Shown here piece by piece: positions 46,435-50,763 of a stretch of DNA of 64,000 bases. The translations under genes and the position numbers were made by a program. Under the pieces are notes generated by a model, which saw only the letters and a program-made list of their open reading frames with translations, did not search any database and was not told the origin of the DNA. Origin of the DNA: Ministeria vibrans ATCC 50519 (taxonomy: Eukaryota > Protista > Filasterea); the NCBI GenBank assembly GCA_943704425.1, contig CALSCP010001725.1, positions 1 through 64,000 of the forward strand. Direction: 5' to 3'. Within the stretch, counting starts at the first letter, position 1; each line of letters begins with the position of its first letter.

Positions 46435-46480
<46 letters not shown>

Positions 46481-46627
46481 NNNNNNNNNNCGATTGTTCA
46501 CGTGTGCTCGCCCAAGCAACAACCACTCACCGTCCAACCCACTTCTTCGTCGTCACTGTGTGTTTTGCATTGTCCTACCCGAGTCCTCAAACTCGATGCG
46601 GCGTTGAAGCCCATCGAAGTGATCCAT
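42437..46627 (-). CDS. FRMD8: FERM-domain protein, FRMD8/iTAP-like, with long disordered N-terminus; 5' end uncertain
   Basis: FTLWMVSKELELPLK..QPY..QQW, PVLMFRR, LLYVEAERNV..RYP, PFYG, ISWD, LLQLYSYSAELL match the FRMD8 FERM layout. Confidence 0.75.
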
Positions 46628-46730: not shown

Positions 46731-47527
46731 TCATTCATTGCCCACATCCCCTTCGGTCTGGTAGTGCATGGTACGCAAGTCAAGCAGCGCAACACGGGCA
46801 CGCTCCAGCTGCGACTCCAGCTCAAGCACCTTGACATGCATCTCCATTTCCATCCGCTTCGCCTGATGCGCCGACAGCTTCTTGTTGTCCACCAAAGGTT
46901 TGTTCTCATTGGCAACCTATCAAAGTAATTATAATGATTATAATTCCTCTTTTGCTTTGCGTCTTTGATCTCGTACGCGATGACTTGCGTTCTGAGCGGC
47001 TGCCACAAGGTCCTTGGTGGCCGCCGTCACGTCCTTGCTTGCCGTCATGAGCTGTGGCTGACGCTCGCTGTTCGGGATGCTCTGCACAACACAGCATGTA
47101 ATTACCGCGCGACTACTAATACTATCAAGATCGCCATACCTTGACCTTGGACGCAGCGACAAGCTGAGCAGTCGACGCGGAGATCTCCTTGGACGCCACA
47201 ATAATCTCTTCAAACTTGAAATCGTCCTGCGTCACACACGCATCCGCAGACTGCACGAGCAGGCTCGCACCGAACCCAACAGCCTAAATTACAAAGAGCA
47301 ACAACACAACCAAAAACAGAAAATAGATTGTTGTTAGGCATTCTTTTTGATTGTTATTTTGTTACCTTTGCGGCGGAAAGAAGACCCTCCGTCCAACGGC
47401 TGTTCTTCTTGTAAAACTCGCTCGAGGACGCATTGCCTTGACCATTCTCCACAATTTCATCCTGCACAGCGCGCGCCCGGGCCACTAGCACGCGAATGCG
47501 GTCCATCAGGGTAGATGCCGCACCTGC

Positions 47528-47621
<94 letters not shown>

Positions 47622-50525
47622 GAAGAGAGAGGAGGGAGAAAGAACAAAGTGATAGAGAGAGAGAGGAGGAAGGGAGAAAAATACAAAGTGATAGAGAGAG
47701 AGAAACAAAGTGATAGACAGAAAGAGAGGAGGGAAAAACAAAGTGATAGAGAGAAAGAGAGGAGGGAGAAACAAAGTGATAGACAGAAAGAGAGGAGAAA
47801 GAAACAAAGTGATAGAGAGAGAGACAAAATGGATAGAGAGAGAGAGACAAAATGGATAGAGAGAGAGAGACAAAGTGACAGAGAAAGATATATTAATTAA
47901 GTAGCAAAACCACATCCAAAAACAAAACCGGTTCATACCGAGAATGCCTTTGTTGACGTCGAGCTTGGTGCCCTTGTTGGCTTCGTTGGCGGCAAGCATC
48001 TCGGCAATGCGGCGTGCGGCATCTTCAATAAGTTGCATGGCACGCTCCATCTCCGACTGCACGGCGTCTTGCAGGTCGCCTGCGTCGAGTTGGCGCGGAA
48101 TGAGCGACTCGACGACGCCCGACAGCGACTTCACGTCATCCTGGAAGGCACCCGCAGTGCTGTCAATGTTCTTGCCGGTCAGGTCCTGGTTCGCATCGAA
48201 AAACGAGTCGACCATGGCAAGTGCGGAAGTGGCTGCCTTGCGCGCACCTCCCAGAATACCCTCCGAGACGGCACTGTCCACGGCGAGACGCGTGACGCCT
48301 TTGCTTGCGCTGAGTGCCGCAGCGAGCTGTGAGGCAAAGTTGAGCGCGTTTGAGATGGTTAAGCCCTTGGCGTCGGCACCCTTGGTCTCGTCGTAGTGGT
48401 GAAGCGCCGCCGCGATGTCGTCGACGGGCGCAAGTGAGGCGGAGCACAGATCAACAGTCAAGTGAGGTGACGCCTCCGTGTTGCCCAGGTTGCTGGGGTC
48501 GTCGAGGTCGTCGAGTGCCTGCTGCAGCAGGCTGCGGCAGCGCATGAGAATGCCTTTGGCCAGATCACGTACGTTGCGCCGTCGCTCTAGCTCGGCCGCC
48601 GCTAGTTGCTTCTTGAAGCGCGATGCCTCCTGCTGCTTGCTCTTCTCGAGTTCGTCACGTTCAAGACGTGCCTGCTCCAGCTGCTTCTGCAATTGCTCGG
48701 CAACATCGCCCTTGGCGGCCGCCAAGGACGCGTTCTCGGCGCGCAGACGGTCCTGCTCTTGACGCATGGCCGCCACCTGTGCCATCACTTCGGCATGGTC
48801 TGTTTTGGCCTGCTCCGCCGTCGCCGCAGACGCCCGCTGTGCCGCCTCCAGCTCGCCTTTTCGCTTGAGCAGGGCCAAATGATCATTGCGCAGCTTGGAG
48901 TACATCCCAAACGCCTTCTGGTACTTGTCGTCGTTGGTCTTGGCCAGCACGGCGATGCGCTCCAGCTTTGCTTGCATCTCCTTCTGCTCTTCCTGCTGCT
49001 CCTCTGCGCCGCTCACCTCCTGCTGCATCTCAAACAGCTGCTCCTGAAGAGCACGGATCAGATCCGCATCCTTCTTCTTCTGTTGCTCAAGTTCCGAAAC
49101 GCGCTATTAAAAAGGCAGAAAAAGAAGAAAAAAAATCAGTATCTCTGGTTCTTTCCTTTCTCAAGATTGCATGATTATAAGTGATTGATTCTTACGGCAC
49201 GCAAACGGGCAATCTCGGCCTTGAGGGCGGCAATCTGCTTGTCACGGTCGTCGGGACCCGACTGGAAGGAGAAGGAGTCGGGAACATCGCCAAAGGCATC
49301 AAACTTGGCGTCAAAGGAAGGGACGGGCTCGGGTTCGGGAATGGATGCAGGAGCGGGGCGTGGAGGAATCTCAGGGGCACGCAGCCACATGGGTGGGTCG
49401 TCGGGCAGGAGAGGCACCGCAAACAGGTTGTTGAGGTACTTGAGCTGACGCGCGTCGAAGAAGTTCTGCTTGACCGTGTCGAAGACCACGCCAAAGCGCA
49501 CGCGGTGGCCCGACAGCTGCTGTGGGGGCATTAGGTCGTGAATGCGCTTCATGAGGTCCAGGGTCATTTCATAGAGCGCGACACTCTCAGTGAGCAGCGG
49601 CACAAATGCAGCGGCGCGACACTCATTGCGCTGCAGCTGTTCGTTTGGCGAGAGGGTGCCAAAGACGCGACCGGCGAGACGCATGGCCGCCTCCTGAAGC
49701 TCAAAGCAGCGCACGCACAACAGGAAGGCTGTCTGAGACTGCAGGGTCGACGAGAATGCGTGCCAATTGTCCATGTTGAGGTTGCCCGGCAGCGACGGAT
49801 AGTCATGGTGAAACTGCAGTTTGGTCTGAAGAAACTCGACAATGCCCACAATGAGGGGACCATAGCCATGCGACGAGGTGGCATTCTGCCATGTTTGCCC
49901 CAGCTGAGCCAAGCTCGAGCGGGTCTGGTTGAGTTCAGGCAGACAGTTGGGGTGGCCATCCTGCAACACTTTCCACAGCGTAATGAGCGCCTTCCAGCAC
50001 ATCAGGTGGCCCTTGCTGAGCGGCATTCGGCGCATTACAATCCACAGAATGCGGCTGCCCTGTTGGTCCCATGTCGCGACGATGGCACGTGCGGAGGGAA
50101 AGAGGGAAGAGAGAAGAAGAAGAGAAGAGAAAAGAAGGATAAGTTAAACGAGATGGATCGAGAGAGAGAGAGAAAGAGAGAGAGAGAGGGAGAGAACGCG
50201 CTGTGTGTGTGCGTGCGTAGAAAGAAGGTCGCATAAAGAGAGCGAGCATGCGAGAGAGAGGGGAGGGGAGGGAAAGGCGCAATACAAGATGAGAACAATT
50301 CGTATGAGGTGAAGTGGCTCGACAATGTTTTTTTTGTTTGGTGGGGCAACTTATTTCGTATGTGTTTCGACTTTGGCGCTGCTTCGTCGTTGGTGCACGC
50401 TTTCTTGAGGTGTTCTTCCATATCTTTGTCGAGTTTCTTTTCGACATCTGTCGAAAAGAAAGATAAGAAAGGTCAAAAATAAATCCAACGCCCTATTTCT
50501 CACTTGGATCGAGAGGAGCGCTCAT
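46731..50525 (-). CDS. HIP1: HIP1/HIP1R/Sla2 endocytic adaptor (ANTH, coiled coil, I/LWEQ), 8 exons
   Basis: KACTNDEAAPKSKHIR, WKALITLWKVLQDGHP, FYKKNSRWTEGLLSAAK, SKEISASTAQLV, EMEMHVKVLELE. Confidence 0.95.
47530..47890. repeat. (GA)n + tandem ACAAAGTGATAGA array (HIP1 intron)
   Basis: Multiple motif copies. Confidence 0.95.
50089..50354 (-). other. AT-AC intron (HIP1 intron 2, phase 1, 266 nt)
   Basis: CGA A|ataagt...ccctccgcac|GT GCC gives KHIR-S-AIVATWD; no GT-AG pair found that keeps this conserved motif. Confidence 0.8.
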
Positions 50526-50763
50526 GATGAGGACGATACAAAGCTACACGTGCTCAGCAATAAGTCACAAGAGAGAGCAGTTGGAAAATTGAGTGACGGA
50601 CTGACGCGTCACAGACTCTGAAATCAAATCATTCCATTCGATCCTGAGTGAATTCCTGACCAAGGGTAAACATTACTCCGTAGTCGTAAAGTAAATGAGT
50701 GAGTTATATTTTAGCTTAAACAATTTTACTTGATATCGACTTCTTTTTGTGGCCCTTTTCTTG

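Follow-up and report, generated by a model that had tools for sequence, protein, structure and literature searches.

A probable U2-type AT-AC intron in the HIP1/Sla2 gene of Ministeria vibrans, at a site shared with U12-type introns of animal HIP1

The stretch of DNA considered here (the window) comprises the first 64,000 nucleotides (nt) of contig CALSCP010001725.1 in the assembly GCA_943704425.1 of the filasterean Ministeria vibrans ATCC 50519, and carries on its minus strand an orthologue of the HIP1/HIP1R/Sla2 genes whose second intron begins with AT and ends with AC (Table 1). Both the N-terminal ANTH and the C-terminal I/LWEQ domains are present in this gene: the product of exon 3 was recovered as an ANTH domain (Pfam PF07651, E = 3e-38), and its best relatives of solved structure are the HIP1R and Sla2 ANTH structures in the PDB (E = 1e-34 to 2.5e-23). 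The closest named relatives of the gene product come from Filasterea (Capsaspora and the EukProt entry 'Opistho-2'; 44-46% identity), and a single copy of the gene is found in the 29.7-Mb assembly. Exon 2 ends in ...AAA CAC ATA CGA A, with its last base at 50355, and exon 3 opens at 50088 with GT GCC ATC GTC GCG ACA TGG GAC, which encodes (S)AIVATWDQQ. Transcript contigs extend upstream of the coding part of exon 1, to about 50587.

To examine the splicing of this gene we compared the contigs of four public runs (X13, X9, X20 and X2) with positions 48000-50700 of the window. Spliced contigs came from X13, X9 and X20, which represent three studies (one contig per run; X20 is a polyA RNA-Seq library), and in each of them 50088 is joined to 50355, such that exactly 50089-50354 (266 nt) is skipped. 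The ends of the skipped segment are GT..AT on the plus strand, i.e. AT..AC on the strand of the gene, and the joint is unambiguous, with 0 bases shared across it; its shorter side measures 93 nt in X13, 93 nt in X9 and only 23 nt in X20. The neighbouring introns at 50448-50503 and 49104-49195, both of them GT-AG, are spliced out in the same contigs. The X2 run, from a study other than the likely source of the assembly, supplied unspliced contigs that cover 48000-50148 and 50229-50700 with 0 differences; as these agree with the window at both ends of the intron, the terminal AT and AC are not assembly errors.

Using the exons as separate queries, and joining them only in a script that translated the junction, we found that AT-AC splicing yields the conserved stretch KHIR-S-AIVATWD, which corresponds to KHIRSAVITTW, KHIRAAIITTW and KHIRTAIISTW in homologues. 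A scripted listing of every GT/GC-AG pair that would keep the frame without a stop produced 43 combinations; all 43 remove SAIVATWDQQ of the ANTH motif, and none of them is represented among the RNA contigs. Further, the stretch from the in-frame stop (the TAA in TTTAAC) to the conserved motif is free of AG. The excision of HIP1/Sla2 intron 2 at AT...AC ends is thus confirmed. A preliminary description of this DNA, made from its letters alone, had already placed an AT-AC intron at these coordinates, which prove exact to the base in all three spliced runs, and had proposed the joint A|ATAAGT...CCGCAC|GT as the one that restores KHIR-S-AIVATWD, in agreement with both the RNA contigs and the homologues. 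Its remark that the nearest frame-preserving GT-AG pair deletes the conserved motif is true of the entire list of alternatives, and its statement that the other introns are GT-AG is borne out for the two neighbours. It had also named a junction on another GT-AG pair and misassembled terminal bases as outcomes to look for: the transcript contigs contain no such junction, and the X2 contigs speak for the terminal bases.

As an independent observation on this intron, the frame of exon 2 is open throughout it because the intron is so pyrimidine-rich, resulting in a 128-aa open reading frame (ORF) at 50035-50421 on the minus strand. A retained intron 2 would therefore be translated over its whole length, and translation would not end before 50035, where exon 3 is read in the wrong frame.

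We then examined the splice signals of intron 2. Its 5' splice site departs from the U2 consensus at +1 alone, whereas ATAAGTTG matches the U12 5' site consensus ATATCCTT at just 4 of 8 positions; ATATCCTT itself is not found in intron 2, and nothing of the TATCCTT core is present at the 5' site. At the other end, the final 62 nt are about 90% C/T, the terminal AC holds the sole adenosine within the last 50 nt, and the last AG of the intron is situated 113 nt upstream of the 3' end. The nearest motifs of the form yUnAy are TTAAC, whose A50144 is 55 nt from the 3' end, and CTTAT, whose A50140 is at 51 nt. U12 introns need their branch point close to the 3' end, at roughly 10-26 nt, and this intron offers no adenosine there, so that no branch point lies at the short U12 distance. 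Likewise, the U12 branch site TCCTTAAC is not found ~10-20 nt from the 3' end, the nearest candidate being TTTAAC at 55 nt, with no adenosine between. The layout thus looks to be that of a U2 intron whose branch point is distant and is followed by an AG-free zone. U2-type AT-AC introns have been described as showing a 'very strong /ATAAGT consensus' (PMC5029451; likewise PMC1557818), and in yeast and human U2 introns a G1->A change is rescued by G(last)->C (cited in PMC1557818). The proposal of major-spliceosome signals in the preliminary description fits with this, both in the match to the published U2-type AT-AC consensus and in the lack of a U12 5' site or branch site at a permissible distance within the intron. 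Taken together, these features suggest that intron 2 is a U2-type ('type II') AT-AC intron in a single-copy gene, a classification that does not depend on whether the genome keeps a minor spliceosome.

Table 1. Parts of the HIP1/Sla2 gene and signals of its AT-AC intron (positions in the window)
Feature	Position	Strand	Details
Exon 1, coding part	50504..50525	-	ATG 50525-50523; MSAPLDP + 1 nt; RNA contig pieces end at 50504
Intron 1	50448..50503	-	56 nt, GTGAGA...GACAG, GT-AG, phase 1; joint 50447/50504 in X13, X9, X20
Exon 2	50355..50447	-	93 nt; (N)VEKKLDKDMEEHLKKACTNDEAAPKSKHIR + first base (A) of Ser codon
Intron 2 (AT-AC)	50089..50354	-	266 nt, phase 1, ATAAGTTG...CTCCGCAC; joint in three runs
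5' splice site ATAAGT	50349..50354	-	U2 consensus GTAAGT with A at +1; preceding exon bases GAA
Candidate branch region TTAACTTAT	50139..50147	-	two yUnAy matches; predicted
Polypyrimidine tract	50091..50138	-	~50 nt; AG-free
3' terminal AC (intron ends CCGCAC)	50089..50090	-	first downstream AG 28 nt into exon 3, unused
Exon 3	49196..50088	-	893 nt, most of ANTH domain; Pfam, ANTH structures, RNA contigs
Intron 3	49104..49195	-	92 nt, GTAAGA...AATAG, GT-AG; joint in X13, X9, X20
I/LWEQ (talin-like, actin-binding) domain, C-terminal part of the same gene	46938..47213	-	Pfam PF01608, E = 3e-6

Removal of such an intron would begin with the recognition of AUAAGU by U1 and then U6 through positions +2 to +6, and U2 would pair with a branch site that lies far from the 3' end, around UUAAC/CUUAU and 51-55 nt upstream of it, after which comes the long AG-free pyrimidine tract visible in the intron. 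In the second step, as the published rescue of mutants suggests, the terminal C and A+1 could form a non-Watson-Crick contact, as G+1 and G-1 ordinarily do. Such a contact would explain why the AC is used and the AG located 28 nt downstream is not, in keeping with the known requirement that the first and last bases of an intron match.

To place this intron in an evolutionary context, we searched exon 3 against protein representatives and took the genomic loci of named homologues, while splice-site 12-mers for mouse and human were quoted from the supplement of PMC6717393. Three relatives (P0001, P0007 and P0008) were rejected as genomic comparators, being intron-less transcript contigs. An intron at the same codon position and in phase 1, after KHxR plus an 'A', was found in the window, a fish (L008), a coral (L011), Capsaspora (L006) and a fungal-type metagenome contig (L012). 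In the HIP1 gene of the barramundi it reads AGG A|ATATCCTC...TCCTTGAC, with AC| 13 nt past the branch A, and is a textbook U12 AT-AC intron. The coral Desmophyllum has AGA A|ATATCCTTT...TTTCTTAAC and AA|GT GCA 10 nt further on, a U12-type intron which splits the Ser codon as A|GT just as in the window. The state differs in Capsaspora owczarzaki, where intron 1 of CAOG_06601 (about 800 nt) is a U2 GT-AG intron, CGC A|GTAAGT...GACAG|CG, and in the fungal-type contig, CAC A|GTGCGT...CACAG|AA, likewise a GT-AG U2 intron. In Allomyces (L010) the site is intron-free. Of two metagenome scans, the first gave no match and the second only the fungal contig.

In mammals, the tables of Olthof 2019 (PMC6717393 supplement) list minor introns for mouse and human HIP1 (AT-AC subtype; GGA/GAA|ATATCCTTT) and for mouse and human HIP1R (GT-AG subtype; GGC|GTATCCTTG), and the three exon bases in these entries fit an 'Arg codon plus first base'. 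Splicing of Hip1r drops fourfold with a U12 locked nucleic acid (LNA; PMC8848931). ZNF593 has no entry in the minor-intron tables of PMC6717393. The preliminary description had suggested a U12 intron at about this point of animal HIP1/HIP1R, and both these lists and the fish and coral introns bear this out; the comparison of position and phase it had suggested returned the same site in phase 1. Separately, we noticed that the coral HIP1 model (P0313; L011 8954-9938, Desmophyllum pertusum GCA_029204205.1) is named 'histidine permease', starts with MPLPTQ and lacks the first exons. The missing exons sit upstream of the U12-type intron with its presumed AT-AA ends, which was evidently not modelled by the annotation.

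We next surveyed the M. vibrans genome for a minor spliceosome. An Rfam scan of the whole assembly recovered U2 (100 bits) and U6 (57 bits) but did not find U12, U11 or U4atac; U6atac gave only 17-bit fragments, and U1 was missed by the same scan (RF00003 undetected at E <= 0.01 despite the genome being intron-rich). Either U1 is absent from the assembly, or its gene is divergent or interrupted. No Pfam match to PDCD7, zf-U11-48K or the SNRNP25 Ubl domain was obtained in the genome, in protein scans that had no eukaryotic positive control. Because U1 also failed and the protein scans lacked such a control, we do not accept these scans as evidence of absence, and the search for minor small nuclear RNAs (snRNAs) and proteins that the preliminary description had called for gave none of the components, with the U1 control failing alongside them. 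One locus (L001, G000:C1494, 1501-1524, minus strand) carries GTGTTGATCGAAAGGAGAGAA, which contains the AAGGAGAGA box and shares 19 of 21 positions with the 5' end of U6atac; it was rejected as a gene since no recognisable U6atac 3' stem-loop follows, and is probably a chance match. The match at L002 was rejected as GA-rich low-complexity sequence. Scanning the 29.7 Mb with a strict U12-intron pattern (RTATCCTT, then TTCCTTRAY, then AC/AG 6-16 nt on) returned a single match, rejected because the opposite strand at that place is a P450-like coding exon.

An oddity of the spliceosomal RNA genes surfaced in the same survey. The sole U6 match is split (L003, G000:C648, ~1428-1566): ataatACAGAGA is followed, directly after ACAGAGA, by an insert of ~27-29 nt, aacccgcacgcctttgtgggaactgtc, and then by GAAGATTAGCATGGCCCC, the Rfam match of 57 bits covering only the 3' part.

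The comparison across organisms leads us to regard intron 2 as, quite probably, a U2-type AT-AC intron that descended from an opisthokont U12 AT-AC intron by replacement of the internal signals and retention of the termini. The ancestral intron at this codon position would have been of the U12 type and had AT-AC ends, a state that animal HIP1 retains; in the lineage of M. vibrans its U12 internal signals would have given way to U2 signals, the termini remaining AT-AC. The A...C ends may have been retained because a change of one end alone breaks the A-C match and would be harmful. The outcome would be the 'trapped' state that Lin et al. 2010 put forward, with Capsaspora and the fungi possibly representing complete conversion and Allomyces intron loss. 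Lin et al. 2010 described a 'rare pathway' with this trapped end state from sodium-channel genes only, and among orthologous U12-to-U2 conversions in U12DB, 87 of 87 ended as GT-AG, so that as of 2010 this database contained no orthologous case of the direct route (both PMC2831892). U2-type AT-AC introns account for about 0.003-0.008% of animal introns (PMC1557818); given such rarity, it is very unlikely that one should fall on the animal AT-AC site by chance, and common descent of the termini appears to be the best explanation. On the strength of this orthology, the idea of the preliminary description that an ancestral minor intron switched spliceosome and kept its ends is strongly favoured. 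We speculate that the distant TTTAAC is a remnant of the U12 branch site that an expanding CT repeat has moved away from the 3' end. It is conceivable, though we hold it only tentatively, that M. vibrans has lost its minor spliceosome or is on the way to losing it, and that the major spliceosome now processes a few remaining 'fossil' AT-AC introns, in HIP1/Sla2 and possibly other genes; such a set, if real, would document in nature, and across a whole genome, how AT-AC U12 introns are converted directly into AT-AC U2 introns.

Other explanations for these observations have to be considered alongside this one. An error of the assembly or contigs, a processed paralogue, or template switching might have created a false junction, to which the origin of the RNA support in assembled contigs and not raw reads, as well as the CT repeats within the intron, lend some colour. 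Template switching, however, needs a direct repeat, and the joint, common to three studies, shares no bases; the neighbouring GT-AG introns are spliced in the very same contigs, an independent unspliced contig agrees at both intron ends, the gene is single copy, and the product restores the conserved motif residue for residue, leaving an artefact with a negligible likelihood. Somewhat less improbable, yet still very unlikely, is that a divergent minor spliceosome continues to remove intron 2, its snRNAs having escaped our scans and its splice-site preferences having drifted. That the Rfam scan also missed U1, whose presence is expected, would accord with this, as would the interruption of the only U6 gene after ACAGAGA, which indicates that snRNA genes can be atypical in this genome; there are also the U6atac-like locus with its 19/21 agreement and candidate GTATCCTT donors in other genes of the genome. 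The intron itself argues otherwise, with a 5' site devoid of any TATCCTT core, a long pyrimidine tract and no adenosine within 50 nt of the 3' end; moreover, 0 of 4 minor snRNAs and 0 of 3 scanned minor-spliceosome protein domains were detected, the one match to the strict genome-wide U12-intron pattern falls in a coding exon on the other strand, and the U6atac-like locus is without the conserved 3' stem-loop.

The most serious competitor, though in our estimate an unlikely one, is an independent origin, whereby an ancestral GT-AG U2 intron acquired both G1->A and G(last)->C, the likeness to animals being coincidental or animals having converted a U2 intron to U12. The Capsaspora intron at the same site, GTAAGT...AG, is one base from ATAAGT, the fungal contig is likewise GT-AG, and splicing of the double mutant is established (PMC1557818). 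Against this, such a path has to pass through a single mutant that is poorly spliced, in an endocytosis gene that is both essential and single copy, and with U2-type AT-AC introns at ~1 in 10^4-10^5 introns, the presence of AT-AC or AT-AA ends at the same site in fish, mammals and coral would be a striking coincidence; conversion from U2 to U12 is, for its part, regarded as exceptional (PMC2831892). Descent from a U12 AT-AC intron hence remains the reading that we prefer, and several points weigh against it. The RNA support consists of assembled contigs, which reveal neither minor isoforms nor the efficiency of splicing, and the X20 joint, with only 23 nt on one side, is weaker than the others. 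The acting spliceosome and the position of the branch point are deduced from the sequence, and the AT-AA ends of the coral intron were placed by the reading frame without RNA support. The nearest non-animal states, in Capsaspora and the fungus, are GT-AG U2 introns, and tree-blind parsimony alone does not force a U12 ancestor; the argument for one draws on the AT-A(C/A) termini held in common and on the accepted view that conversion runs only from U12 to U2. Lastly, the one weak point of descent from a U12 intron is that a loss of the minor spliceosome from this genome is no more than possible.

Elsewhere in and around the gene, a gap between ORFs at ~47460-47935 of the window has an intron-like character, with a CT-rich minisatellite and a (CT)n run. 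Its CT-rich repeat motif recurs at 1080-1450 on another contig (L014, G000:C2121), beside a P450-like gene, and we therefore consider it a dispersed CT-rich repeat family. Just downstream of the 3' end of the gene, at ~46470-46500, an N run and a long A/T homopolymer mark an assembly gap.

The disappearance of U12 introns is an open question, for which deletion and conversion via a GT-AG stage have been documented, while direct conversion with retention of AT-AC ends has so far been argued only from sodium-channel paralogues. The site described here displays, at one position, U12 AT-AC (fish and mammalian HIP1), U12 AT-AA (coral) and U12 GT-AG (HIP1R) introns, together with a putative U2-type AT-AC intron in this protist, U2 GT-AG introns in Capsaspora and the fungus, and no intron in Allomyces. 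As every state is found at a single orthologous site, the conversion pathway becomes testable on a single gene. The kind of intron is already known; in the literature searched we did not find such an orthology series at one site, or its occurrence in a unicellular relative of animals. At a practical level, gene finders restricted to GT-AG introns break this conserved gene, as happened with the coral gene model.

U2-type ('type II') AT-AC introns were reportedly treated by Wu and Krainer in 1997. Examples are found in human SCN4A and SCN5A, and in TAF2 of human and fly (Sheth et al. 2006, PMC1557818). Like these, the M. vibrans intron combines AT-AC termini, /ATAAGT and a pyrimidine tract with the lack of a U12 5' site or branch consensus, and belongs to a rare class; unlike them, it resides in HIP1/Sla2 of a unicellular animal relative, its predicted branch point is unusually distant (>50 nt), and its U2 dependence is predicted from its sequence. 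Whereas U12 descent of the SCN introns has been argued only from paralogues (PMC2831892), the site of the M. vibrans intron is occupied by a U12 AT-AC intron in animal orthologues. With the U12 intron of animal HIP1 it shares the gene family, codon position, phase 1, the preceding A and the terminal AT...AC; the animal introns, however, have ATATCCTY, carry TCCTTGAC at 13 nt from the 3' end and lack a pyrimidine tract, in contrast to the ATAAGT, ~50-nt pyrimidine tract and solely distant TTTAAC of the M. vibrans intron. Intron 1 of Capsaspora CAOG_06601 has the same position and phase and a U2-type xTAAGT 5' site, and differs in its GT-AG termini and length of ~800 nt. Finally, for Monosiga brevicollis, a choanoflagellate without U12 snRNAs, Table 2 of Bartschat & Samuelsson 2010 (PMC2846911) gives 10 'Other AT-AC' introns, which likewise represent non-U12 AT-AC introns in a unicellular holozoan; in that table they are counted and not traced to U12 orthologues, whereas the M. 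vibrans intron shares its site with the U12-type introns of animal HIP1.

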